NCBI RefSeq assembly: GCF_006345805.1 | Contig: NW_021832015.1 | Coordinates: forward strand, 62,001-126,000 | Source: Octopus sinensis | Lineage: Eukaryota | Reading direction: 5' to 3' | Length of the DNA: 64,000 nt | In this document: piece by piece, positions 4,621 through 54,523 of the stretch | Numbering within the stretch: position 1 is the stretch's first letter | Layout of the letters: each line of letters begins with the position of its first letter | Notes under the pieces: model-generated | Database searches by the model: none | Seen by the model: only the letters and a program-made list of their open reading frames with translations | What the model was told of the DNA's origin: nothing | Program-made: the position numbers and the translations under genes

Positions 4621-4676
4621 ATGAAGTTAGCAAGGCGGTGGATTAGTTCTGTTCTCATTTTTGCAACTGTAGTTCG
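4621..4676 (+). CDS. Candidate first coding exon (signal peptide) of the PAN/apple-domain gene
   Basis: ATG-initiated MKLARRWISSVLIFATVV(R) has a basic N-region and a hydrophobic core, and ends at a strong CG|GTGAGT donor (phase 2). The phase matches the micro-exons at 17068 and 17181. An inverted CCAAT (ATTGG) lies at 4472. The link across a 12-kb intron is inferred. Confidence 0.4.
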
Positions 4677-4999
4677 GTGAGTTTTAGACAATATGTTATA
4701 TTATTGTGATGTCTGTCTCTGTGAGGTTTGCCTTCCTTCCAGAATTATGCTTGCCAGAACTGGCTTCACTTTAGTTTTGGAATGCCAATGTGATTTTAGT
4801 GACTGTACCTCTCGAAATTTGAAGCTTTAACCACCTGTTTGGAAATCAGGTAGGTTACACATTTTAATGTATATATATATCTGCAAAAAATAGCAAAGCA
4901 AAAGGCCACATCATGAAGTACGAAGCATGCATACACATACAAACTAGAAAAGTTTTGAATTTATCATACTGCCGATAGAAAGAAATTACTTAATTAAAA

Positions 5000-5225: not shown

Positions 5226-5594
5226 TGTTGAGTAATATTCAAGAGAGAAAATACCCAGAACAAACTTTATCCTTGTCCAGCTTCATTCAATGCTGTTACT
5301 CTGGAGTGCATCTTCTCCTGAGAAGCCAAACCGGGCGCTTTCGATGTGACTTGTCTGAGGAGATTTTGTACTGTTTCGGTCAACCTAATTTCATTCACGT
5401 GATATGTATTTACTAAGGCGAAGAGCTGGCAGAAACGTTAGTACACCGGGTGAAATACTTAGTAAATAAGAGTAAAAATTAAAAAATAACAACCCTTGTC
5501 GGTTCCTTTCATCATTTTTTTTACAGCAACTACTAACCGGATGTATTTGTTCACCTCCAACAATAGAAAGCATCGCCGTATTTTATTCCATGAT

Positions 5595-5686
5595 GGTTAT
5601 CTCTGAAGAGCGCAGGGTTACATAATCGGACTATTACTTAAGACTCCGTTGTACTCTCAGTGCGAAACCGATTGGTAAGATCGGCT
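5595..5686 (+). ncRNA. Type I hammerhead ribozyme with intact core (probably Penelope-derived)
   Basis: Core CTGAAGA at 5603-5609. Stem II is GCGC/GTGC then AGGGT/ACTCT with a long extension. GAAA at 5664-5667. Stem III is ACC-GATT-GGT. Cleavage triplet GTA at 5675-5677. Stem I is ATCT/AGAT. Confidence 0.7.
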
Positions 5687-5711
5687 GTAATTGTTATATA
5701 CTACTGTACAT

Positions 5712-5791
<80 letters not shown>

Positions 5792-5802
5792 TAGATAGAT
5801 AA

Positions 5803-5884
<82 letters not shown>

Positions 5885-6075
5885 TATGCGCGCACCCACA
5901 GACACAGACACACACATATATATATATATATACCCACTTAAACGTGGATGTTCTATTAGAACAAACTTTACTGTGATAGTTACCATGAGAGAAACTCTCA
6001 TACTGGCTTTCTGATGTAAATCTTGTTTATATCGCTAGCTGGAAGATAGATTCCCGCTATCTCCAGTGCCGAGAT

Positions 6076-6479: not shown

Positions 6480-6890
6480 TACTCTAGGCACACGGCCCGA
6501 AATTTTGGGGGAGGGGGCCCAGTCGATTAGATCGAACCCAGTACGCAACTGGTACTTAAATTATCGACCAAAGTCGACCTTGGCGGAATTTGAACTCAGA
6601 AGTAAAAATAATCGAAATACTGCTAAGCATTTCGCCCGACGTTCTAACGTTTCTTATTTCTTTATTGCCCATAAGGGGCTAAACATAGAGGGGACAAACA
6701 AGGACAGACAAACGGGTTAAGTCGATTATATCGACTCCAGTGTGTAACTGGTACTTAATTTATCGACCAAGAAAAGATGAAAGGCAAAGTCGACACCGGC
6801 GGAATTTGACCTCAGAACGTAGCGGCAGACGAAATACCGCTACGCATTTTGCCCGGCGTGCTAACGACTCTGCCAGCTCGCCGCCCTTAT
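6480..6890 (-). mobile_element. Octopus-type tRNA-derived SINE (GGCGGCGAGCTGGCAGAA family), composite copy
   Basis: Reverse complement matches the + copies at 31668, 34488 and 53380 (GAGTTCAAATTCCGCCGAGGTCGACTTTGCC). Confidence 0.85.
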
Positions 6891-9668: not shown

Positions 9669-12600
9669 GTCTCTTTATTAACCACACAGGGCTGCACACA
9701 GACGGGACAAATTACAAAGTAGAGTTTGGGGGGGGAGAAAAAAAAGAAAAAGAGGGGTAGGTTTTCGATCAAAAGGGATCGTAAAAAGGAAAGGAAAAAA
9801 ATGATCAATAGGGATCGTGTATCACAGAAATGTCATGATGTAAGGTTTAAAGGAGAAAACAGATAAGGTTTATTCGTGGAAAGAAAAGCCTACAGAAAAG
9901 ACCACTGTAACCTCGGTCGATAATGTCACATGTTAACACATTTATTTGCAAGTAAGTAACTCTCTGTTTTAAATTTTTCCTGGTTCATAAGATTATGCTC
10001 AAGGTGGCTTCGTCATACGTGCTATCCTTGCTACATTCACCCATCTTTTTTGCAACATTCGCTAGACAAAACTTCCCTCTCTACCCTTACTTTCCTTTTC
10101 AAGTGATACTTGAAGAAGTTGATGAGAGATTGACCAGAGAGGAAAGTGTTTGTCTCTAGGCCTTTCAGACGCGTCCACCAGATACATTCTTTCGCCATAA
10201 CCACAAGGATGATGAAAATATCTCTTCCTTCCCGTTTGAAGGAAGAAGGCGTGAAGATATTGACGATAGACTCGGCTGATAAACCGACTCGTTCCACACG
10301 CGACAGCATTCGTTCGACATAAGCCCACAGGTCGGAAATGGTTGGACACTGCACGAGTTCGTGCAGAACGCTTTCGTCGTTCTGACCGCATCTCGGACAG
10401 GTCGGCCCCATGTTTCTCGAGCCGTGTCTGTAGAGCTTATCCCGAACGGGTAGCGCTTCTCGGTAACACTGCCACGCCAGGGATCTCTGGAATTTGTCCA
10501 TAGGTCCTGGCCCGAAAGTCGTCCTGAACAGGCGGGTCAGGTATTTCTCGTCGATTTCCAGGTTCGCCCCGAGCTCGTCGTCGTACTTCCCCTCCACTAA
10601 TCCCCTATAGAATGCTTTGGTTGTGTTAAAGTCGCTCAAGGTGCGACCCGGGACGGCATAGTTGCTTGAGAGCAACGCGACACACGCGGTGCCATTCGCC
10701 CTTCCTCAACCTCTTTTTGATCCACGACAGTAGTTCGGCCATGGAGACGAGTTGCGGGAAAGCGTGCTTCACAAACAGCGACCACACCTGTTCGCCGTCG
10801 TCTACGTAGAGCCGGAAATGTCGCAGTCTCAGCGTGTGTCTGCGCATCATCAACCACGGCATGCCCAGTCCTCCTTTTAACGGGTGTTGACAGCAAATGG
10901 CTCGCCTGACGCATCCTTTCCACAAGAAGCGGAAGAGAATACGTTCTAGTTTGGTGATGGTAGGGTCGGGACAAGGCACGATGGTCAGGCACTAGTAGAT
11001 GACGGACGCAATATACGCGTTCGCCAACTCCGCCCGACCTTTTAGGGATAGCTTCCTCTCGGCCCATTGCCGGGCGAGAGTTGCCACCCTACTCGTTATC
11101 TCGTCCCAGTTCTTTTCCGTTTGGGAGTTCGGACCAAACCAGAGCCTGAGTTATTGACCGGACCGTCAGTCCAGTGTCCCACGACGGAGGCGCTGCTGAA
11201 CAGCATGGGCTTGCTTCTCCAGGTGCCGAACCGCAAGTCCACTGACTTTTCCTGGTTGATTTTCGCTCCCGTTACCGCTTCGTAGTCTTTCAGTGTCTCG
11301 ATGTGGTCGTGGCTAGACACTATTACTGTGATGTAGTCCGCGTATACAGACACGCTCGTCCTGCATCCCAGTTCTCGCGGGATGCTCCTCAGCGTCGCCA
11401 GCTTCCGCAGTAGTGGATCGAGAGTCAATACGTACAGAAGCTACGAGAGGGGGCATCCCTGACGGACCGAACGTGCAATGTCGAATGGTCTGGACAGATG
11501 CTCATTCATGCGAATTACCGAACGGATACCTCTGTATAAGGCAGCGATCCAACCGCTGAAGATGGGACCGAAACCAGCCGCTAAGAGGACAGCCTCCAAG
11601 TATCAATTGTCTACTCTATCGAAAGCTTTGAATTGATCCAAATTGATCAGGGACCCAACCATGCTAGGTTCCTTAACTATTCCATCTATGATGTAGCGCA
11701 TCAGATGGGGGTTGTCATGGTTGCTCCAGCCCGGCACGGTCCACGTTTGCACCTTGTCGACCAGTTTCTCGATGACAAGCGCCAGCCTCATGGCTAACAC
11801 CTTGGCCAAAATTTTCAAATCTGCATTGAGCGGCGGGTTAGGCCTAAAGTTATCTATTACGTCCCCATTGTTTGGATCTTTCTTCAACAGCATTACGGCT
11901 CCTCGGCTCACAAAACTGGAGATGTTCTCGTTTTGCTGCCAGTTGTAGTATACTGCTGCCAAGACGCCTCCAAACAAGTCTGGCATACAACTGTAAAGCT
12001 CGTAGGGCAGATCATCCAAACCCGGTGATTTGTCCCTCGAGCATTCTGCCATCGCGTCCCGCACGTCCGCCGCTGTGATAGTACCTTTGCAACACTCTGC
12101 CTCTCTTGCCGAGAGTCGGGGCAGGCTATACAGGTAAGCACTGAAGTCCACCCTGCGTTCTGATTCGCCACTTGTCCCGTACAGTTGGGCAAAGTGCTGC
12201 TGAAAGGCCTCACACATTTTACTAGGCTCGAGTAATTCGCGCCCCTGTACATCCATCAGAGACCGAATGGTAGCTTTGTTGCCCTGTTGCGCCTCTGCCA
12301 CCCGGGCCTCTCGCGCGGCTCCAACACCTTCGTTTCTTAGAACACGCATCCTAGCCCAGACAACGCCCTTCGTGTTTGGCGTTGAAGTGTTGGTCGAGGA
12401 CCAATCTCACCGCCGATATGTCAGATGCGATGCTACTTCTAATCGCCTCTTCTAGTTTCTTAACTAGGTCTCCCTCTATTTTGTTTCTATCTATTGCTAG
12501 CGCTTTGCTATATCTAATCGATTCAGCTTTTATTGATTTCTTGAGGACAGACCACCATTTGTTGTTGATAGCTCTCGTAAAAGCCCTCTTCACCAGTGTA

Positions 12601-17661: not shown

Positions 17662-17919
17662 TTGAATATCTAAAGTATTTTTTCAAAATAGAAAACTGTA
17701 GTTTGAAGGGATGTAAAGCATTCATGACACTTGACGTGGATGCCTTCAACTGTTCGAAGAAGTGTTTTGAAACTTCTGCATGTAAATCCTTCGTGACCAG
17801 CAAGAAAAGTCCAAGTTGTGCTTTATACCGACGAGACTCAAAAGACAAGACACTAATGAAAGTCAGTGAGACTAATTTATATCAGTTGAGAAGATCTGTG
17901 CCGACCAAGTATAGAGACG
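17662..17919 (+). CDS. PAN/apple domain exon 1 (phase 1-1)
   Basis: Acceptor GTTACAG| and donor G|GTAAAC; 258 nt. ...NCSKKCFETSACKSFVTSKKSPSCALY... fits the PAN C-x3-C-x5-C-x-S/A-F-x7-C-x-L pattern. Confidence 0.85.
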
Positions 17920-19989: not shown

Positions 19990-20590
19990 AGGCACAAGGT
20001 CAACAATCACGAGAGAAGAGATAAGTCGATTATATCGACCCCAGTATTCAACTGCTACTTATTTTATCGCAAATTCGATCCCGGTGGCATTTGAATACAG
20101 AACTTAGAGACGGATGAGCTGCTGTTACTACTATAGGTATAAGGCCTGAAATTTCAGAAAAGTGGGTAATTCGATTACATCGAACCCAGTACGCAACTGG
20201 TACTTATTTCCTGAAACCCGAAAGAATGGACGGCATAGTTGACCTCAGCGGAATTTGAACTCAGAACGTAAAGACGGACGAAATGCTGCTAAGCATTTTG
20301 CCTGTCGTGTTAATGACTCTGCCAGTGATGATCATGATGATGATAATAATGATGACGACGACGACAATAATAAAAATAATAATGATTTCAAACTCTGCCA
20401 CAAGGGCAGCAGTTTTGGGGGAGAGGATAATTTGATTACATCGACCCCAGTACTCAACTGATACTTATTTTGACGACCCACAAAGGACGAAAGGCAAAGT
20501 CGACCTCGGCGGAATTTGAACTCACAACGTAAAGACGGGTGAAATTCCGCTAAGCATTTCACCCGGTGTGCTAACGATTCTGCCGCCTTA
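19990..20590 (-). mobile_element. Cluster of tRNA-derived SINE copies (GGCGGCGAGCTGGCAGAA family)
   Basis: Several repeats of GTCGACCTCGGCGGAATTTGAACTC interleaved with (GAT)n/(AAT)n. Confidence 0.85.
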
Positions 20591-24982: not shown

Positions 24983-27900
24983 CAGTAGTTTTATTTTTAT
25001 AGCGTGCTTTCACTTCACTACTACCGAGCGCAGCTCTGTGTGCCTTGGGTATGTACTGTGATTTGTTGTGATGCTCTGATGGTTATTGTATGAAAGTGTT
25101 CTGCGTAGGATGTGTGCAGTGCCTAGTAGTGCAATTTTCTGTATGTTATATGTGTTTGTAAGTCCTGGTGTTTTTGTTATGTATTTGTCTGAATATTTTT
25201 TTATCATGCCTAATGCACCTACTATGATAGGAATTGTTTCTGTTTTCAGATTCCACATTCTAGTTACCTCTATTTCCAGGTCTTTGTATTTTGAGAGTTT
25301 CTCCATTTCTTTTAGAGACACGTTGTCATCAGCCGGTATTGATACATCAATTAGAAAGTATTTTTTTTCTTCATGATCTCTGACAACTATATCTAGTCTG
25401 TTGGCCTTAATTTCTCTATCTGTGTGTATCGGCATATCCCAGAGTATGGTTGCTTTCTCGTTTTCTGTGACCTTTTCTGGTGTGTGCCTATACCATCTTT
25501 TTTCTGTTGTTATTCCATAATGTTGGCATAGCTTCCAATGTATGTAGGTTCCAACTCTGTCATGTTGTGAATATATTCCTTCTTAGCCAGGACTGGGCAG
25601 CTAGAGATAATATGATTTATTGTTTCTTGTTCATCTCCACATATTCTGCAGTTACTTGTAATTTTCTTTTCATTACATGTTTTTGGTAATTTCTGGTGGG
25701 GAGGCTTTGGTCTTGTGCTGCAATTAAAAATCCCTCTGTTTCTGCTGCTTTGAGTCCTGAGCTTCTCAACCATTGCTGGGATTTTTCTTTGTCTATTTCT
25801 TTTGCGTTTAGTTTAGTCCAGTATTTACCATGAAGGGGCTTTTCTTGCCATCGTTTTATCATGGTTCGTTGCTGTTCTATTTTTAGTTTGGATTTCATTT
25901 GTTTTATAGCTTTTGTTGTTTTTCTTCATCTTCTTCTTCTTCTTCATGTTTATTAGGTGGTATGATTTCTTGTTTGTATTTGTCAGCTTCCTAAAATACT
26001 GAGAACAGTTTTTTGTTTTGCTCGTGTTTTGCCGCTATCTGGATCAGTTTTCCTTCCTTCTGAAGTAGATATTTTTGCAGTCCTATGGTGGTTATTTTAT
26101 AGTAGTTTTCCAGGTGTATAAGGCCTCTACCACCTTCTATACGTTGTATATATAGTCTTTCTATGTCAGATTTTGGGTGATGCATCGTAGATCCTGTCAT
26201 TATTTTTCTTGTTTTCCTATCTATTTTGGTCAGTTCATTTCGTGTCCAGTTAAGGATATTGTAGCTGTAACTTATAACTGGGACAGCTAAAGTGTTGATA
26301 CCTATTATCTTGTTTTTAGCATTGAGCTCTGTTTTTAGTATTGATCTAACTCGTCTATAATATTCTTTTTTTATTTTCTCTTTCATTTGTGTGTGTTGTG
26401 TCTTATCTAGTTCATGGATTCCTAAGTATTGTAAGTTTGGCTTTGGTCTAATTCTTTTATTTCATTGGTTTTATCTAGTGTGATGTTGTTACTGTTAACT
26501 AGTTTTCCTCTTTTCATGGTTACTTTGGCGCATTTTTCTAATCCAAATTTCATATCTATTTCTTTGGTAAATCCATGAACTGTCTTTAATAGTGTTTCCA
26601 GCTGTTTGTCATTTGCAGCGTATAGTTTTAGGTCATCCATATATAAAAGGTGGCTGATCGTTTTGCCGTAACATTTATATCCGCATCCAGTTCTATTTAG
26701 CATATCAGATAGAGGTGACAGTGCCAAGCAGAAAAGGAGTGGAGAGAGCGTGTCTCCCTGGAATATTCCTCTTCTAATGGGGATGTCTTTGGTTTTCATG
26801 AGTCCCTCTTTTGTTTGGAGGTGTAGGACTGTTTGCCATTTATTCATAGAGTGCTCTATGAATTTTATGATTGCTGGTGCTACTTTGTTAATGGCTAGTG
26901 TTTCGAGGATCCATGTGTGGGGGATGCTATCAAACGCCTTTTTGTAGTCAATCCAGGCCATACTGAGGCCTTTCTCTTTCTGTGGCTGTCTTCAGTTATG
27001 GCTTTATTAATCATTAGTTGATCTTTACAGCCATATGAGCCTTTGCGGCATCCTTTCTGCTCTTCTGGGAACAGTTTGTTTTCGTCCAGGTGCTTGTTCA
27101 GCTTTTGTGATATCACTGCAGTAAATGCCTTGAACATAGTAGGGAGGCAGGTTATTGGTCTGTAGTTTTCTGGTTTTTCTGTTTCATTTGATTTGGGAAT
27201 TAAGATGGTTTTCCCCTTCGTGAGCCATTCATGCATTGTCTCTGGCTCTGCCAGTATGTTGTTAAAGTTTTCAGCCAGCTTTTTGTGCATTCCTGTTAGA
27301 TATTTCAACCAGAAGTTGGGGATCTTGTCATGCCCAGGTGCCTTCCAGTTGCTTAGTCTTTGCAGTGCCTGGGTGACCTATTCAGTTGTTATGGGGGTCC
27401 AAAGTTGTTCAGATGCCGAGTTTGTTATTTTGATACTCCTTTTTTTTGGTGGTTCGTTCGCCGACCATATTCTCTCTCCAGAATTCTTCCAATTCTTCTG
27501 CCGTTGGTGCTGCAGTGACTTCTATTTTATTTTTGCCCAGTTCTTGGTAGAACTTTTGGGGGTTGGAGTTGAACTTTTTGTTTTCTTCAAAGAAGCGTTG
27601 GCGTTTCTCGTACCGGCGGATCCTTTGTGCTTTGGCAAGGATATCTTGCTTCAGCTTTTCTTTTATTTCAGGCAAATCTTTCTGTGTGATGTTATATTTG
27701 CGGAGTATTTTTGTTCTCTTTTTGTTGCTCAGTAGCGTTGATTGTTTGCTGATTTCATTAAGAATCGACAGGTTTTTCTAATTTTTTTAATTTTGTTTTG
27801 GATGTTATTTATCCACAGGGTTTGTTTGGGTGGTGGTACTCCTGTTTGAGCGGGTTTGGGTGAGTATCCAGCTTCTTTTGTGGCTGCAGTGGCTGCTGCG

Positions 27901-29198
27901 TATATTAAGTCATTTAGCTCAGTGATATCACTTTTTTTTTATTCAGTGGCTATCAGTTCAGTGACGGCTAGGTTTATGCTGTTTATAATAGGTGTTGTTA
28001 TTTCGTTTATTTTGATTCTTGGGAGGTATGGTCGGTGGTCCATTTTGAGCTCTGTGGTTGTCAGTTCTTTGATTATTTTATTTTTTGTATTATCATAATC
28101 ATTAGGCTCCCCTGCGTTGTTTACATCGTGTTTGTTGGGAATGTTGCATTTGTCTTCGTGTTTTACAGTTTCAGTGTTTATATTATTGGGCATTGTTGTG
28201 TGGCTTCTATCTACATTTTCCTGGTGTATGTTTTCTTTTAGGTGTTCTATTTCTATTTCTGATATTTTTTGTGTGTTGAGAGTGTATTTTCGTACGTTAG
28301 CTAATTTATTAGGGTTCATTGCTGTATCCAAGTCTATATCTCTATTATTTTCCTTCCATATTTTATATGTGTTGTTGTATTTTTATTTTTTGGGTAGAGT
28401 ACTGCTGTGAAGTATGCGTGTAAGATAGAAATGTATTCCTCACGTGTCCATTTACGTCTTTTGGGTTTTATTTGCGGGACATGAGGTACAACGTCCGGCC
28501 CATTATTTTGACGGTCGTCATTTTCGTAGGGTTCCGGTCCGTTTATTTCTGTTGTCACATTATTTCGCACGTGTAGTTTTTCGTACATTTTTTGTTGTAA
28601 GTTTAATGTACGTACCGCTCGATTGTTATTATTGGGTTGAATAGTATCGGTGGCATTTAATTTCTTCGTAGTTCCTTTGTACATGGTGTTTGGGGTCGGG
28701 GATGATCGTGATGTTCCACCCATGTTTACATGTGTTGCGTTAGAGGCGGAGATGATATCGAGTCAAAATACATCATTTCGTTTCGAAAATAGTAATAAAT
28801 TTCAATTAGTATTACTTACTCGGATACAGTCCAATTCTTTGTTAGTAAAACTTTGGCTCCATAGGATGTCCTTGTTTTCGATGTTTGTGGATAGATTTCG
28901 GAGCTCTGTATTTTCCTACTTACATCTTAAACGTCCCCGGTGTTCTCTCTTCCGTTCCGGTGTTCTTTTCCGTTCCCGGTGTTCTCTTCCGTCCCCGGTG
29001 TTATTATTATTATTAATTATTATTATTATATTATTATTATATTATTATTATTATTATTCTATGTTTGACTTTTGCTTTATGTCTGTACAAGTTGGCTCAA
29101 GTCTCACCAGAGACCTCAAGAGACAACAGGTTGAAGTTCTGTGCCATATATTTGGGTTTTTTTTGGTGTTGTACTAGTGAATGTCCCCCGGTGTTCTC

Positions 29199-29416: not shown

Positions 29417-29647
29417 GAAGATGCCCTTTAGATTTGATTTACAATACTGCTCTATATTATAACAATGATCTGAATATCATTGATGGTATTAATTACACGC
29501 AATGTCTGCTTGATTGCGAAGCAATACCAAATTGCCGGTCGTTTGACTATAACTCTAATTCCAAAAGATGCCAGTTGTCAACTAAAGATCATACAACTGT
29601 TAAATTGAGTTTTAACACGGAGTGGACTTACACCGAAATAAACAGAG
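29417..29647 (+). CDS. PAN/apple domain exon 2 (phase 1-1)
   Basis: Acceptor TTTTCTTCTTACAG| and donor G|GTAAGG; 231 nt. RCPLDL...YTQCLLDCEAIPNCRSFDYNSNSKRCQLSTKD...WTYTE is a textbook PAN_1 pattern. Confidence 0.9.
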
Positions 29648-30699: not shown

Positions 30700-31335
30700 A
30701 TATTCACGACGGACTCGGTTGATAAACTAACTCGTCCCACACGCGATAGCAGTCGTTCGACATAAACCGGAAATGGCTGGACATTGTACGAGAGCGTGCA
30801 GAATGGTTTCGTCGCTCTGATCGTATTTCGAGCAGGTCGGTCCAGTGTCCCACGACGGAGGCGCTGCTGGACAGCATGGGCTTGCTTCTCCAGATGCCGG
30901 GCCGCAAGCCCACTGACTTTTCCTGGTTGATTTTTACTCCCGTTACTGCTTCGTAGTCTTTCAGTGTCTCGCCGACCAGCCCGATGTGGTCGTGGCTAGA
31001 CACTATTACGGTGACGTAGTCCGCGTATGCAGACACACTCCTCCCGCATCCCAATTCTCGCGAGATGCCCTTCAGAGTCGCCAGCTTCCGCAGTAGTGGA
31101 TCGAGAGTCAATACGTATAGAAGCGACGAGAGGGGGCATCCCTGACGGACCGAACGTACAATGTCGAAAGGTCTCGATAGATGTCCATTCACGCGAATTA
31201 CCGAACGGATACCTCTGTACAACACAGCTATCCAGCCGCGGAATACGGGACCGAAACCAGCCGCTATGAGATCAGCCTCCAATATCGATTGTCTACCCTA
31301 TCGAAAGCTTTACATTGATCCAAATTGATCAGAGC
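30700..31335 (-). mobile_element. Tx1-type L1 RT fragment (same family as 9669-13490), internally deleted
   Basis: VRQGCPLSSLLYVLTLDPLLRKL...SAYADYVT; near-identical to 11170-11650. Confidence 0.9.
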
Positions 31336-35526: not shown

Positions 35527-37668
35527 GTTTGACTTTTGCTTTACATTTGTACAAGTTGGCTCCACGTCTCACCCAGAGACCTCAAGAGACAAGTTGGAAG
35601 TTCATGTTGGTGTTATGCCTAGGGTGCCATATATTTGGTTTTGTACTTAGCGTTGTACTAGTGAATGTCTAAAAAAACCATACGAAAATTATGTTTGTTT
35701 TAAAACTTGAGATTACATACAAAGTATTTTGCGTAGGATATGAGCAGTTCCTATGAGCACTATCTTTTGAATTTCTGCCATTTGGGGGTTTCCTAGTATC
35801 TGAGTTAGGTAGCTATCAGCCCCTTTTGCTATCATTCCCAGGGCACCAATGACAACAGGTATTGTTTTAGTCTTTAGGTTCCACATTTTGCTGATTTATA
35901 TTTCAGGATCTTTATATTTGCTCAGTTTTTGGTAGGTCTTGACAAATATGTTTATATCGATTGGGACAGTCATATCAATGAGGAGGCATGTTCTTTGTCT
36001 GAAGTCTTTCAATATGATGTCTGGCCTATTTGCATCTATCTTCCTGTCAGTTTGAATGGTGAAGTTCCAGAGGAGTGAGATGTGATCATTTTCAAGCACT
36101 GAAGGTGGTTTGTGTCCCCACCAGTTTTTATCATGGGGCAAGTCAGGCTTTTGCAAATTACCCAGTGAATATATTGTGCAGCTCTATCATGCCTGTTGAG
36201 ATACTCTGTAGGTGCAAGAAGACTGCACTTGGAGACAACATGATCAATCGTTTCATTTTGTTGTTGACATACACAACATGTTGAGATACTGCCGTTCTTT
36301 AATATGTTGGTCTGGTAGTTCCTTGTAGGTAGGCATTGATCTTGAGCTGCTATGATAAACCCTTGTTTCAGATTTTAAGCCAGAGGCCATTAGCCATTGA
36401 TGGGTCAGGGCTTTGTCAACATCGGCATTATTCGCTCTCTTTGGGTATTTGCCATTGAGAGGTTTTTCTTGCCATTTATCAATCAGAATATCTAAGGCAG
36501 CAGTTTTAGCACGGGTTTTCGTGCGCTTAACTTTTTCTGTGCTTGTTTCTTGTATGTCTAATTCCAAAGTTTGTTGTATTCGGAATTCACTTAGATATTG
36601 CTTTGCCTGTTTTGTTACTGAGTATGATGCTTTCTTGTTTTCATGTTTTGAGACAAGTTTTAACATCCAACCCTCAGAGTTTTTCAGGTAGGTGTCTAGG
36701 CCAATTGTAGCAATCTTCATTGTTATTGCCAGTTGTAAAAGTCAACGGCCTCCCTCTTTTCTTGGCAGATAAGGTCGTTCTATATCTGCCTTAGGGTGGT
36801 GCATTCTATGCATTGTCAACAGTTTTCGTATTTTTCTGTAAAGATTACACATTTCAGTAACTGACCAGTTAACGATATTGAAACTTTAAGACACGACTGG
36901 TATGGCTAAAGCATTGATCGCTTCGATCCTGTTTCTCGCATTCAGCTCTGTCTTGAGTATTGCTCTTACTCTGCGATAACATTCTCTCCTGATCCTTTCC
37001 TTCATCACTGAATGCCTTATTCCGTCCTCTTCAATTACCTCTTGGTACTTGTAGCTCTCCGCTGGGTCTAACTCTTTTATGACATTCTGCTGGTCAAGGT
37101 TAACGTTAGATGTTTCTGTCATTTTTCCTTTGATAAAGGTAGCTTTTGCATATTTATCTAGGCCAAATTGCATTCTAATGTCATCACTGAATTGTTTAAC
37201 AATCGCTAGTAAGCCCTTGAGTTGTTGGTCATTTTTTGTAAAGAGCTTTAAATCATCCATGTAAATGAGATGATTTATATTTTTATCAAACATTTTATGT
37301 CCGTACTGTGCGTCATTGAGCAATTTTGAGAGAGGTATTAAGGCTAAACAAAAGAGGAGTGGTGATAGTAAGTCACCCTGGAAAATGTCACATGAAATTT
37401 TTACATCACCAGCATTTAGAGATTCATTGTCACTGTTCAAAGTTAGTGTGGTTCTCCATGATCTCATACTTACAGACAAAAAGTTTCGCAGATTAGGCGC
37501 TATTTTATACAATTCCAGACATTTCTTAATCCAGGTATGTGGTAGGCTACCAAAAGCTTTTTTATAGTCTATTCAGGCTATTGATAAGTTTTTATGTCGT
37601 TTGTGACAATCTTCTAAGATCATCTTATTGATGAGTAGCTGATCTTTACAACCATAGGATCCACGTTT
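35525..37668 (-). mobile_element. R4/Dong-like retrotransposon, 5'-truncated (family C)
   Basis: DIFQGDLLSP, YMDDLKLF, FGLDKY, zinc-knuckle region, LLWNFTIQTDRKIDANRPDIILKD..LIDMTVP; (TAA)n tail at 35437-35524. Confidence 0.9.
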
Positions 37669-37692: not shown

Positions 37693-38128
37693 CAGTAGTT
37701 TTATTTTTATAGCGTGCTTTCACTTCACTACCGAGCGCAGCTCTGTGTGCCTTGGGTATGTGCTGTGATTTGTTGTGATGCTCTGATGGTTATTGTATGG
37801 AAAGTGTTCTGCGTAGGATGTGTGCAGTGCCTAGTAGTGCAATTTTCTGTATGTTATATGTGTTTGTAAGTCCTGGTGTTTTTGTTATGTATTTGTCTGA
37901 ATATTTTTTATCATGCCTAATGCACCTACTATGATAGGAATTGTTTCTGTTTTCAGATTCCACATTCTAGTTACCTCTATTTCCAGGTCTTTGTATTTTG
38001 AGAGTTTCTCCATTTCTTTTAGAGACACGTTGTCATCAGCCGGTATTGATACATCAATTAGAAAGCATTTTTTTTTCTTCATGGTCTCTGACAACTATAT
38101 CTGGTCTGTTGGCCTTAATTTCTCTATC

Positions 38129-44769: not shown

Positions 44770-44980
44770 GTTTCAAACTTTGGCACAAGGCCAGCAATTT
44801 CAGGGGTGGGGTTAACACATTACATCGGCCTCAGTGTTCAACTGTTACCTGGTTTATCGACCCCGAAAGAATGAAAGACAAAGTCGACCTCGACGGAATT
44901 TGAACTCGGAACGTAAAGACGGTCAAAATTCTGCTAAGCATTTTGTCCGGCGTGCTAACGATTCGGCCACTTCGCCGCTT
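44770..44980 (-). mobile_element. tRNA-derived SINE
   Basis: GTCGACCTCGACGGAATTTGAACTC family motif. Confidence 0.85.
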
Positions 44981-46983: not shown

Positions 46984-47174
46984 AAAAAGAAATTAATGAT
47001 TTGACAGCTTTTTCAACTTTTACTTTTAAGCGAAATACATTTAACAACCTTGTAACCAAGACCGACACGAAAGCTCACTCAGTTTTTGATTGTTCACGTA
47101 AATGCTTGATATCTTCTCCATGTATCGCCTTTTCATATAGTAGTAATTGGTGCCAACTAAAGAAACAAAATTAA
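46984..47174 (+). CDS. PAN/apple domain exon 3, terminal coding exon (phase 1 to stop)
   Basis: Long polypyrimidine tract plus GTTACAG|. Encodes ...FDCSRKCLISSPCIAFSYSSNWCQLKKQN*. AATAAA at 47295. Confidence 0.8.
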
Positions 47175-49429: not shown

Positions 49430-50050
49430 GGTCAATCTTTGCTTAGCAGCTACATTCTGCGTGCTTTAGCTTCGTTACTATGGCAACAGTCCAGATACTT
49501 ATTGATCAGACTTTGTATATTGAAGAATTGGTGAAAGTATGCAGAGGTTGTGCTTTAGCTTCAAAAGCTACTACCACTAAATGGCAACCATGGCCAAAAG
49601 CAGATATTCCATGGTCCTAGTTTCTAAGAGTATACCGAGTAACACCTAGTCCCAATCCCCCGTCTGGAATGTCACTTGTGGAATTAATGTTTGCTAGAAA
49701 AATCAGATCCGTCTCTGATAAGTTGATACCGAGTTAAAAAAGAAGAATGGTGAACAACAAGTATACTCTAAGAACTATAGATATGGTAAAGAAATCTGGG
49801 AGAACGGAATAATTATTAAAGAAATTGGAAAAATATTATTCCTGGTAAAAGAAAAAAAATTTCGAACATAAAAGACATATAAACTAACTTTTAAAAAGAT
49901 GTACAGAACAGTCACGAGAGATGAAATTCCCAAGGAAGTATTGTACGACACGTTTGAGGTACTAACACCCAAACAAATGGAAACTAGATATTTAAATAAC
50001 AGAAAAAGGAAAAGAACGGAAATATTGGAATTAAACCCTAAGCGTAAGAG
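49430..50050 (+). mobile_element. Gypsy integrase-region remnant (continuation of 48270-48715)
   Basis: IEELVKVCRGCALASKATTTKWQPWPKADIPWS; later frameshifted TPSPN...MSLVELMFARKIRSVSD. Confidence 0.75.
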
Positions 50051-50102
50051 ATATTACACTCTGGAGTGATATATATATCTATATATATATATATATATTG
50101 AT

Positions 50103-50175
<73 letters not shown>

Positions 50176-50195
50176 TATATATGATATATGAATTT

Positions 50196-50567
50196 AAAAA
50201 ATGATGGATTTGTATAGCGATAGACAGAACGCTATTAATATTGTTTAAAAAAACGTTATATGATATAACGTCATAAGTAGCTAACAGAAAGAGTAGGGAT
50301 ATTAATAGTGAATGTTAAATATAAAGGAAATTAAAGCTTAAATTATATATAATGATAGAGACTACTTATATGCACTAAATGTATGTTTTTGCCAATGCTT
50401 ACATCTGTATGCTCGCTCTATAACCGTGTTTACTAGAGTATTTTTAGAAAAAATAATGAAAAATAGCTCAGAATTGCAGAGAAGACAGAATTTCTTGCCT
50501 TTGTCATATGGTATCGAAATTGAGAGAATCAACCATTCTAAATGAAATTGTTCATTGTGGTCTTTTA
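50196..50567 (-). mobile_element. Inverted partial copy (pseudo-LTR arm) of the Penelope-like element at 50805-52060
   Basis: Reverse complement of 51391-51759 with few differences. Confidence 0.9.
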
Positions 50568-50577
50568 CATGAAATTT

Positions 50578-50731
50578 ACATGAATCACAAGTCTGCTTAA
50601 AAGCAACTCATCACCAAAGAATTGGCTGACCTGACCTGATATGGCCTGAGAAGATCAGAGTAAGAAAGCAGACTAAACGAAACTGGCACTCCGTCGGTTA
50701 CGACGGCGAGTGATCCATTTCCTCCGTTCAA
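50578..50731 (-). repeat. Exact 154-bp inverted copy of 54154-54307
   Basis: Base-by-base comparison shows identity over 154 nt. Confidence 0.92.
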
Positions 50732-50804
50732 TAATGTAGATCAGATTTCTAGTCGTAAAAGAATTATTGATAACAAACATAACTTACGCACCGATACAAA
50801 ACGA

Positions 50805-51566
50805 ATGAAGGCAGATAACCCTTATTTAATCCCCTATTATCGATCTAAAAGTAAATATAAAACCTTCAAAAGTAATTACGCTATGAATACTAGTAAAAAT
50901 ATTTGGTTAATAATTCCTTACGGGAGACAAATTAAATCTAATCTCCCACTGCTGTTTCGTCAAGCTATTGCTAGGAATTTTCCAAACAATTCTAGATATT
51001 ACTCTATAATCAATTCACATAAGGTTAGGATAGGTTTTACAAACACAAAACATCTCTTGCAAATTATCTCTTCTCATAATAACAAACTGTTAAATATTAA
51101 TACATTTACTAATACTAACATTAATTTAGCTAATACCATCCAACCCTCTAGAAATATTAATAACAAGGTTATTGTATCTGAAGTCAATTCCAATAGAATT
51201 AAGTTTATGTCAAGTAACTCTAAGATTAAAAATTCTATATACCAGTGTATATTTAGTACTCGTAATAAAGTACGATTTTACATTGGAAGCACATCGTTAG
51301 AGTTATCTAAAAGAATTTCTATCCATTACTCAACATTTAGGGATAGAAATAAACGGAATAGTACCGGTCTCAGCAAACTGATTTGGGATTTAAAAGACCA
51401 CAATGAACAATTTCATTTAGAATGGTTGATCCTCTCAATTTCGATACCATATGACAAAGGCAAGAAATTCTGTCTTCTCTGCAATTCTGAGCTATTTTTC
51501 ATTATTTTTTCTAAAAATACTCTAGTAAACACGGTTATAGAGCGAGCATACAGATGTAAGCATTGA
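50805..51566 (+). CDS. Penelope-like element GIY-YIG endonuclease ORF (253 aa, no RT)
   Basis: IWLIIPY..IKSNL..FP..NSHKVRIGF..IISSHN, SIYQC...FYIGST..LSKRISIHYSTF...TGLSKLIWDLKD...CLLCNSE..RCKH. This is the Penelope/Neptune-group GIY-YIG signature. Confidence 0.88.
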   Translation: MKADNPYLIPYYRSKSKYKTFKSNYAMNTSKNIWLIIPYGRQIKSNLPLLFRQAIARNFPNNSRYYSIINSHKVRIGFTNTKHLLQIISSHNNKLLNINTFTNTNINLANTIQPSRNINNKVIVSEVNSNRIKFMSSNSKIKNSIYQCIFSTRNKVRFYIGSTSLELSKRISIHYSTFRDRNKRNSTGLSKLIWDLKDHNEQFHLEWLILSISIPYDKGKKFCLLCNSELFFIIFSKNTLVNTVIERAYRCKH

Positions 51567-51790
51567 CAAAAACATACATTTAGTGCATATAAGTAGTCTC
51601 TATCATATATATAATTTAAACTTTAATTTCCTTATATTTAACATTCACTATTAATATCCCTACTCTTTCTGTTAGCTACTTATGACGTTATATCATATAA
51701 CGTTTTTTAAACAATATTAATAGCGTTCTGTCTATCGCTATACAAATCCATCATTTTTTGCTAAAATGTCTTATTGACGAGTTTCGTTTT

Positions 51791-51884
51791 TTTCACTTTC
51801 CTGAGGAGAGGATTGCATTGTTTATACCATTTATTCTTTTGAATAGTATCAGTGGAATTTTCGAAACATGTGTCGAGAGTAAAA
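51791..51884 (+). ncRNA. Type I hammerhead ribozyme in the Penelope 3' region, intact core
   Basis: CTGAGGA at 51801-51807. Stem II GAGGATT/AATTTTC extends to a TATTC-TTTT-GAATA hairpin. GAAA at 51863-51866. Stem III AC-ATGT-GT contains the palindrome ACATGT. Cleavage triplet GTC at 51872-51874. Stem I is TTTCACTTTC/GAGAGTAAAA (9 of 10 positions pair). Confidence 0.85.
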
Positions 51885-52085
51885 ATATTTGATAACACCT
51901 GCGTTAATTTTTTTATTCATATTATTCAAAATATTCAACGTAAACACAAAGTTTCTACCTTTATAAACAAGTAGTTACAACACCTTTACTCGTGAGATTT
52001 TTGCTGCCCTGGTACCTATTTATTTATTTTTCCGTGTTAATTGTTAACAAGGTAAAAATACACTCATCTATTTATATATTGATAT

Positions 52086-53350: not shown

Positions 53351-53379
53351 ATGTTTTGTTGTAACAAATGTAACATTAA

Positions 53380-53780
53380 AGGCGGCGAGCTGGCAGAAAC
53401 GTTAGCAGGCCGGGCGAAATGCGTAGCCGTATTTCGTCTGCCGTTACGTTATGAGTTCAAATTCCGCTGAGGTCGACTTTGCCCTTCATTCTTCCGGGGT
53501 CGATAAATTAAGTACCAGTTACGCACTGAGGTCGATGTAATCGGCTTAATACCTATGTTTGTCCTTGTTTGTCCCCTCTATGTTTAGCCCTTTGTGGGTA
53601 ATAAAGAAATAGGTATTTCGTCTGTCTTACGCTCTGAGTTCAAATTCCGCCGAGATCGACTTTGCCTGTCATCCTTTTGGGGTCGATAAATTGAATACCA
53701 GTTGCGTACTGGGCTCGATCTAATCGACTGACCCCTTCCCCAAATATTTTGGGCCTTGTGCCTAGAGTAGAAAGGAATAA
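53380..53780 (+). mobile_element. Full composite tRNA-derived SINE (GGCGGCGAGCTGGCAGAA family)
   Basis: Head plus duplicated GAGTTCAAATTCCGC module. Confidence 0.9.
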
Positions 53781-53884
53781 ATGTTACATTAAAATTATGT
53801 CTGTCTGCTACGATTGTTCTGGTATTTCTCACCACCATCTCCCTGCGATTATACTCTACTTTGTTCTGGTTACTCTCTGTAGGG

Positions 53885-54205
53885 AAGGCGTGTGGCAAGA
53901 GTATTCGGCTCTAGATTGTAAAGTCGTGAGCTCGGTATCCGGCGGCGCTTTGTGTCCACGAGCAAGTAAATTCATTTTCACGTTGCTCCAATTCACTCAG
54001 CTGGCAAAAATGAAAGTTGTACCTGTAATTCAAAAGGGCCAGCCTTGTTACATTCTGTGTCACTCTAAATCTCCCAGAGCACTGCGGTAAGGGTAGACAT
54101 GCCTGTGGAGTACTCAGCCACTTGAACGTTAATTTCACGAGCAGGCCGCCCCGTTGAACGGAGGAAATGGATCACTCGCCGTCGTAACCGACGGAGTGCC
54201 AGTTT
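53885..54205 (+). mobile_element. tRNA-derived SINE related to the 1118-1354 family
   Basis: Shared TTCACGTTGCTCCA.T.CACTCAGCTGGCAAAAATGA block. The 3' boundary near GTCGTAACCGACGGAGTGCCAG is approximate. Confidence 0.65.
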
Positions 54206-54523
54206 CGTTTAGTCTGCTTTCTTACTCTGATCTTCTCAGGCCATATCAGGTCAGGTCAGCCAATTCTTTGGTGATGAGTTGCTTTTAAGCAGACTTGTGA
54301 TTCATGTCCGTTGGCATCAAGCATCACCCTATATGTGCTAGCTAATTAACTGTGCTGTACGTCATTAAACTTTGATGACCCGGCTAGGTTCAGTGTAAAA
54401 TAGATGTTTGGTGTCTGGGACAGCGACGCTAGGTAGAAATTAAAGGTAGCGGCGGGCTGCAGGATTCCGAAACCAAGTTCAATTTACTCAACACAACGGC
54501 GCTTCAATTATGTGTGTGTGTGT

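Follow-up and report, generated by a model that had tools for sequence, protein, structure and literature searches.

A complete type I hammerhead motif

The 64,000-nucleotide stretch of Octopus sinensis DNA analysed here (contig NW_021832015.1, positions 62,001 to 126,000 of the forward strand; hereafter "the window") contains a complete type I hammerhead ribozyme core with its three helices at 5599-5681 on the plus strand, as read directly from the sequence and as recovered by a descriptor scan. The motif lies upstream of three exons that encode PAN domains, and a second hammerhead, carried by a Penelope-like element (PLE), is found further downstream in the same window. A first-pass annotation had described the motif as an intact hammerhead ribozyme in the predicted first intron of the PAN gene. 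The core, the G10.1-C11.1 pair, the stem lengths and the coordinates that it gave were correct to the letter on the plus strand, and so was its same-strand distance of about 920 nt to a candidate splice donor: 919 nt separate the GT at 4677 from the motif downstream.

All conserved positions of the hammerhead consensus are present (C3 U4 G5 A6 N7 G8 A9, G12 A13 A14, the pair A15.1-U16.1, and an H17 that is not G). They map to 5603-5609, 5664-5667 and 5676-5677, and the pairs G10.1-C11.1 and C15.2-G16.2 are present as well. The motif opens with the 5' strand of helix I (AUCU, 5599-5602), which forms 4 bp with AGAU at 5678-5681 before a U-C mismatch at the next position. The core segment C3 to A9 follows as CUGAAGA (5603-5609, N7 being A) and leads into helix II, a long irregular hairpin of 54 nt (5610-5663) that is closed by G10.1-C11.1 (G5610-C5663) and continues with C-G, G-U and C-G pairs, a 2-nt bulge and further pairs. 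Folded alone, helix II has a single end-to-end hairpin of -11.3 kcal/mol as its minimum free energy (MFE) structure. GAAA at 5664-5667 provides G12 to A15.1, and helix III (5667-5676) consists of the A15.1-U16.1 pair (A5667-U5676) and two C-G pairs (C5668-G5675 and C5669-G5674) around a tetraloop, GAUU. This loop 3, ACCGAUUGGU, is self-complementary when G-U pairs are allowed, with two G-U pairs in the context CC-GAUU-GG. From its position relative to the core, H17 is A5677, which places the predicted scissile bond at 5677/5678.

On its downstream side, a short 3' tail (5682-5709, +) separates the hammerhead from a microsatellite at 5710-5885, read as (TA)n followed by (GATA)n, which we presume to be the insertion target. 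The first (TA) run of at least 4 units begins 33 nt past H17. Upstream, the 5' head of a short interspersed element (SINE) and an A-rich stretch after it (5415-5470, +) bound the unit that carries the hammerhead, at 5496-5709.

The motif exceeds what chance would be expected to yield

Descriptors of three stringencies were used: a strict one set to the stringency of the motif itself, and looser medium and relaxed versions. With the strict descriptor, the site at 5599-5681 is the only match in the window, and there were no matches in 4000 first-order Markov shuffles of the window, equivalent to 256 Mb searched on both strands. As a further control, 3779 permutations of the core letters were run as decoys on the real window, with decoys that re-found true sites removed. 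Their totals were 0 strict, 8 medium and 74 relaxed matches, or 0, 0.002 and 0.02 per decoy; the shuffle expectations are 0.0037 (medium) and 0.044 (relaxed) per window. An analytic estimate puts the chance expectation of the motif at ~6e-5 per window. The true core has two medium matches in the window, the second being a hammerhead at 51795-51880 (+), termed HH2 below, for which the chance of such a further match is 0.002-0.004 per window. A more tolerant descriptor that allowed one core mismatch was discarded, as it matched 0.51 times per shuffled window.

The hammerhead motif is thus genuinely present, at a level better than chance. An initial conclusion had been that it was a chance match, drawn from empty Rfam scans, an MFE structure that is not a hammerhead and the lack of repeats; this was abandoned because of the shuffle and decoy controls and because of the second motif with its homologues.

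A second hammerhead carried by a Penelope-like element

HH2 is a type I hammerhead with a helix I of 6 bp, the core CUGAGGA, a helix II of 55 nt (51808-51862) followed by GAAA, and a helix III of a C-G and an A-U pair with the loop AUGU; cleavage is predicted after C51874. It lies 230 nt downstream of an open reading frame (ORF) at 50805-51566, which has no Pfam match and has two homologues in O. sinensis (P0001 and P0002). The genomic loci of both homologues, L001 and L003, carry a hammerhead in the same register 3' of the ORF (L001 5530-5614 and L003 6165-6250). The Rfam Hammerhead_1 model (RF00163) detects HH2 with an E-value of 2.4e-4, and its scores in small windows are 24.7, 21.2 and 17.9 bits for HH2, L001 and L003, all below the gathering score of 34. 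A fourth, divergent copy was found by a covariance model at 520-406 on the minus strand of L001 (O. sinensis GCA_006345805.1, VCDQ01004320.1), downstream of an inverted PLE copy. It has C in place of U4, a helix II of 76 nt and a perfectly palindromic helix III (CAAUUG), and it is presumably inactive.

HH2, L001 and L003, all on the plus strand, have an invariant core, with G, U or A at N7 and C, C or A at H17. Covariation is seen in helix I, and helix III reads CAUGUG or CAUAUG in these three. Helix II measures 55, 54 and 55 nt, although its sequence drifts beyond recognition between some members. With three of the PLE hammerheads as input, RNAalifold returned both helix I and the long helix II, along with 10 compensatory pairs. 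In an alignment of all four sequences, pairing extends to 86.8% of cells, and both partners differ in 14 of the 29 pairs; none of 500 shuffles did as well, and slid controls reached 34-51%, but the alignment had been fitted to the model and is hence biased towards structure. From H17 to the (TA)n tract the distances in the class are 51, 73 and 208 nt. HH2 is a real, element-borne hammerhead.

Searches with tblastn, using O. sinensis PLE ORFs as queries, delimit the carrier of HH2 as a 5'-truncated copy at 50733-52080 (+), homologous to P0001 and P0002. The copy starts at residue 443 of the reverse transcriptase (RT) and comprises the C-terminal part of the RT, the GIY..YIG-like ORF at 50805-51566 and a 3' untranslated region (UTR) with HH2, and it ends at a (TA)n tract, 208 nt after H17 of HH2; (TA)n flanks the copies. 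Locus L003 shows more of the element. There, an ORF of 667 aa with the RT-like motifs SDKT, FDIASFYPS, MGSS..ADL and YRDD is followed by one with IYQC..YIG, R..H, a CxxC beside E and a terminal CxH (motifs picked out by eye), then by the hammerhead, and then, 3.6 kb downstream, by a second ORF with the same N-terminus. As read from the ORF order, this arrangement is a partial tandem, that is, a pseudo-LTR (pLTR). The O. sinensis homologues sit in tandem ORF arrays that bear RT-like (SDKT, YRDD) and GIY..YIG-like motifs, with hammerheads downstream of or between the tandem copies, and the inverted L001 copy has a CxCx5C linker ahead of GIY..YIG.

PLE hammerheads are known to lie in pLTRs near the 3' end of the element, in copies that are usually 5'-truncated and have inverted partners (PMC8557442), and (TA)n is the preferred target of PLEs (PMC8557442). 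PLEs of the Hydra clade in particular combine DKT, the lack of CCHH, CxCx5C, CxxC with CxH, (TA)n targets and hammerheads, and they have been found in molluscs (PMC8557442). The element in the window and its homologues show partial tandem copies, an inverted partner, 5' truncation, a (TA)n target and a hammerhead in the pLTR. These traits match the PLE list, and in detail that of the Hydra clade (PMC8557442), which speaks for a Penelope-like carrier.

Some further structure surrounds this copy. A 375-nt inverted repeat with 98% identity relates 50196-50570 (-) to 51388-51759 (+). Its minus-strand arm copies the endonuclease end and 3' UTR of the PLE in part and in inverted orientation; it adjoins (TA)n at ~50045-50195 and ends 36 nt before the expected start of the hammerhead. 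A perfect inverted repeat of 154 nt (100% identity; 50578-50731 and 54154-54307) encloses 3.7 kb that hold the PLE copy, pieces of a Tc1/mariner-like transposase (~52.3-53.3 kb) and a SINE (53377-53782). A DNA transposon with long terminal inverted repeats, or a recent inverted duplication, could account for these 154-nt repeats.

Predicted fold and expected activity

The MFE fold of 5590-5690, a check proposed by the first-pass annotation, is not a hammerhead, and its stability is at the level of shuffled sequences (z = +0.68). Enforcing the hammerhead pairs costs 4-7 kcal/mol over the MFE, which leaves the hammerhead fold a share of 1e-3 to 1e-6 in the ensemble. The pairing probability is at most 0.003 in helices I and III (at most 0.002 for the helix I 3' strand). 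They are unpopulated because a perfect hairpin of 6 bp (CCGAUU/GAUCGG, 5668-5673/5679-5684, loop GGUAA), seen at 5668-5684 (+) in both the MFE and the centroid structures, occupies helix III together with the cleavage site and the helix I 3' strand. The description "intact", in the sense of an active ribozyme, is not supported, as this hairpin sequesters the cleavage site.

The usual tertiary contact between loops 1 and 2, which hammerheads need to be active at physiological magnesium, is likewise unavailable. Helix I has only 4 bp and is open, so that there is no closed loop 1, and an extension of 46 nt takes the place of a short loop 2. Such hammerheads act in a dimer mode, for which the motif lacks a partner copy. 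PLE hammerheads are described as weakly active monomers in which helix I is short and helix II long (PMC4209133); self-cleavage was undetectable when hammerheads of the PLE type were single, and they act as dimers (PMC4209133), while in Anolis the PLE hammerhead depended on its protein and no RNA ends from it were seen in vivo (PMC11167929). Left to itself, the motif probably has little cleavage activity, if any.

A poor predicted fold does not, however, discriminate between a degenerate reading and a true family member, because HH2, whose hammerhead nature has been verified, is equally disfavoured (1e-3 to 1e-6 of its ensemble). The poor folds of both fit the reports of inactive monomers (PMC4209133) or of help by a protein (PMC11167929).

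Comparison of the motif with the PLE class

The motif agrees with the class defined by the PLE hammerheads in three traits. Its helix II of 54 nt compares with 54, 55 and 55 nt in the class, while ~13% of decoy matches fall between 53 and 56 nt. Its short helix III with a self-complementary tetraloop is as in the class, a trait of ~5% of decoy matches. Finally, (TA)n begins 33 nt after H17, compared with 51, 73 and 208 nt in the class. As a background for this last trait, a (TA) run of at least 6 units lies within 30 nt downstream of 1.9% of all window positions, and within 30-60 nt of 1.9-3.1%; among 76 independent decoy matches, left after excluding 2 decoys that re-found the motif site, none had such a run nearby. 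When the base rate is multiplied by the three class traits, the joint chance expectation comes to ~1e-7 to 4e-7 per window, which is a rough estimate. On these grounds we consider it likely that the motif is the stub of a PLE-type element in (TA)n, a weak and lone monomer. The pointer of the first-pass annotation to PLEs and retrozymes as carriers proved the best lead, as the window itself holds a PLE-borne hammerhead of the same architecture.

Several observations weigh against this assignment. Helix I has 4 bp, compared with 5-6 bp in the class, and helix III is one pair longer. The stability of helix II is not above that of shuffles (z = -1.09), while the other PLE hammerheads reach -1.9 to -5.3. 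A cmscan of the whole window with Rfam 15 brought no hammerhead family to its gathering score. The Infernal searches with hammerhead models that had been proposed as a check gave the same answer at the motif itself, where searches of 501 nt and 111 nt brought up no Rfam hammerhead family at E ≤ 10 (the curated models tested were RF00163, RF00008 and RF02275-RF02277), and RF00163 misses the motif while it detects HH2, L001 and L003 on the plus strand in small windows. Covariance models built from three or four of the PLE hammerheads (R1 and R2) also miss the motif when run on the window without filters at E ≤ 10, and when the motif is aligned to the PLE-hammerhead model in register it scores only 4.8 bits. 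In sequence, its helix II is not significantly similar to those of the class (best p = 0.06), but two verified class members likewise show no similarity to each other. A tblastn search with four PLE ORFs found no PLE coding remnant near 4.7-5.6 kb, which is compatible with an extreme 5' truncation. No other copy of the hammerhead-carrying unit occurs in the window.

The identification of the carrier of HH2 as a PLE also has its weak points. Profile evidence for the reference element is weak, with Pfam GIY-YIG at only E = 0.08 and no RT match; PDB searches were empty, and a single-sequence AlphaFold model had a pLDDT of 47, too poor for use. That the carrier is a PLE hence rests on architecture and sequence motifs.

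Similarity between the flanks of the motif and those of HH2 is at shuffle level, and inverted partners were looked for around the motif with no result other than the self-complementarity of the microsatellite. When metagenomes were scanned for a 19-mer from the motif, the three matches were all in unrelated bacterial contigs. The motif would work like a PLE hammerhead and probably descends from one, although membership of the family is not demonstrated at the sequence level.

The PAN exons and other elements of the window

Three exons on the plus strand match Pfam PAN_1. The first, at 17662-17919, has phase 1 at both ends, and the other two, at 29417-29647 and 46984-47174, are also of phase 1 (E-values of 2.3e-5, 8e-11 and 1.2e-3 for the three). 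Joined in frame, they yield a reading frame of 226 aa, with an incomplete first codon and a stop codon at the end. The candidate exon 1 at 4621-4676 (+), MKLARRWISSVLIFATVV, encodes a plausible signal peptide and is followed by the donor GTGAGT at 4677. Its phase at the 3' end is 2, and a direct splice to 17662 reads ...VVR and then an immediate stop codon. The placement of the motif in the first intron of the PAN gene is thus not supported by this exon; the gene requires an additional exon or another start, and scanning turned up no better first exon. A query with a PAN exon found no protein in a database that contains O. sinensis proteins, and an ORF beside the motif had no database record.

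The window is rich in other mobile elements. Many copies of a SINE, 75-87% alike and with the head GGCGGCGAGCTGGCAGAAACGTTAGCA..., lie at 53377-53611 (+), 6655-6889 (-), 20141-20323, 20402-20584 and 44786-44968. The fragment at 5415-5470, upstream of the hammerhead, matches these copies, and nothing past 5462 does; the idea that the motif is part of this abundant SINE was rejected, as the match is confined to 5415-5462. Decayed retroelement ORFs are found at 10037-12349 (-), 25010-28723 (-), 30704-31282 (-), 36253-37512 (-) and 47-50 kb (+); they include LINE-like reverse transcriptases and, at 47-50 kb, pieces of the RT and integrase of an LTR retrotransposon. The segments 25197-25368 and 37904-38075 are nearly identical. 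Compared with those of O. sinensis, the transposable-element proteins of the window are 42-73% identical. The SINEs, microsatellites and PLEs of the window are in keeping with octopod DNA. Two paralogous ORF pieces at ~55.4 kb (+), MSTQRNIPIFKPFYSNSYPFYNMWNNPWSDFPPFNRL..., and ~63 kb (+), MASPHYPYSRSLTPLYNRMPSWSIWEDPWTDMPPFSRL..., resemble the N-termini of small heat-shock proteins of the alpha-crystallin type; a database search with the piece at ~63 kb found no homologue that shares words with it.

Discussion

The closest relatives of the motif in design are the octopod PLE hammerheads (HH2, L001, L003 and the minus-strand copy of L001), with which it shares a complete type I core, a helix II that is a single hairpin of 54-55 nt, a helix III made of an A-U pair and one or two further pairs around a self-complementary tetraloop, and a microsatellite 33-208 nt downstream. 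It is also like the published hammerheads of PLE pseudo-LTRs (PMC4209133, PMC8557442): they are of type I, helix I measures 4-5 bp, helix II is enlarged, helix III is very short and capped by a small loop that is complementary to itself, and they lie near the 3' end of the element beside (TA)n, with weak activity expected of the monomer. It differs from them in the size of helix II, which has 54 nt here and is described as 7-8 bp there, and in having no recognisable PLE ORF or pLTR beside it. With canonical metazoan type I hammerheads (RF00163) the motif has the core nucleotides and the helix order in common, but unlike them it lacks a closed loop 1 and a short loop 2, and it has no match at E ≤ 10.

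Two further comparisons bear on function. The amniote hammerheads HH9 and HH10 (RF02275, RF02277) are defined by deep conservation in orthologous introns and by efficient cleavage as monomers. Like them, the motif is a single type I hammerhead, possibly on the sense strand of an intron; unlike them, it has no Rfam match. Minimal laboratory hammerheads have three short helices and no tertiary contacts. The motif resembles these in offering a core and short helices only, and any cleavage would be expected to need high magnesium; it differs in that its helices are shorter than those of the usual constructs and in that a stronger alternative hairpin competes.

An origin of the motif by pure chance, in which a unique, non-coding stretch of AT-rich DNA would match the minimal hammerhead consensus by accident, with stems as short as can be accepted, seems to us unlikely. 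Much of what weighs against a PLE origin suits it: stems at the bare minimum (4, 4 and 3 bp), a helix II as stable as shuffles in a region that is itself unremarkable in stability, a hammerhead fold with at most 1e-3 of the ensemble, and the lack of a match to Rfam or to the local PLE-hammerhead models, of a repeat copy in the window and of a PLE coding remnant nearby. Moreover, at ~6e-5 to 5e-4 per window, a few such matches are expected in a genome of 2-3 Gb. The empty shuffles and decoys (0 of 4000 and 0 of 3779 at the strict setting) speak against it, and so does the agreement of helix II length, loop 3 and (TA)n distance with a class that was defined on other sequences; the joint expectation given above is far under the real density of PLE hammerheads that HH2 suggests. 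The poor fold, for its part, is shared by HH2 and does not help to decide. A different source would be a non-LTR retrozyme, a small tandem-repeat element with a type I hammerhead that spreads via circular RNA, of which the motif would be one monomer. The type I hammerhead with a short helix III is of the kind found in invertebrates (PMC7229834), and animal retrozymes have been reported to derive from PLE sequences (bioRxiv 10.64898/2026.07.22.740005). The class is, however, defined by repeats of ~150-400 nt with a hammerhead in each, and here the unit stands without a tandem repeat or a nearby second copy, and no other hammerhead lies within 46 kb, so that we regard a retrozyme as very improbable.

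A function for the host is a further alternative. The motif could be a ribozyme under host selection, possibly exapted from an element, that sits in an intron and cuts the PAN pre-mRNA co-transcriptionally, with effects on splicing or yield. Its core is fully intact amid weak surroundings, it lies on the same strand as the PAN exons, and amniotes are known to have conserved intronic hammerheads (cited in PMC7229834). Nevertheless, the proposed exon 1 does not share a frame with the PAN exons, the predicted ensemble contains almost no formed helix I or III and a 6-bp hairpin competes with them, and the usual loop-loop tertiary contacts are impossible. The lack of detectable self-cleavage in single PLE-type hammerheads (PMC4209133), together with the protein dependence and missing in vivo RNA ends of the Anolis hammerhead (PMC11167929), argues in the same direction, and we give this explanation very little weight. 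A narrower version, in which an element hammerhead has been co-opted, is transcribed in the sense direction within the 5' part of a PAN-domain gene and cleaves the nascent RNA, perhaps helped by a protein or by low body temperature and tuning the output of the gene, appears hardly more than a speculation to us; if true, it would provide an invertebrate counterpart of the conserved intronic hammerheads of amniotes.

We thus favour a PLE-type stub, for which the following model can be proposed. A heavily 5'-truncated PLE, or a non-autonomous unit derived from one, would have inserted into (TA)n, and the motif would be its 3'-terminal remnant, with the type I hammerhead of the pseudo-LTR a few dozen nucleotides before the end of the element. 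In such elements, the hammerhead is thought to process tandem or read-through transcripts; it would be weak as a monomer and require a second copy or a protein of the element. At this site the core would have survived intact but alone, left with a helix I of 4 bp, a helix III of 3 bp and a stronger hairpin over the cleavage site. Sense transcription of the region would then be expected to result in little or no self-cleavage, and no role in a host gene would be expected. For the locus itself the consequences are small, since a lone and probably inert retroelement hammerhead within non-coding DNA is an ordinary by-product of transposition.

The wider meaning concerns the family and the way it is counted. 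A negative covariance-model scan and a poor predicted fold are insufficient to dismiss a hammerhead-like motif, because verified members of the family look just as poor on both. Octopod PLEs appear to carry type I hammerheads with a helix II of ~54 nt that stay under the Rfam gathering score. Since they do, Rfam-based counts of hammerheads in cephalopods, such as the 235 given for the giant squid (PMC6962438), are probably underestimates.

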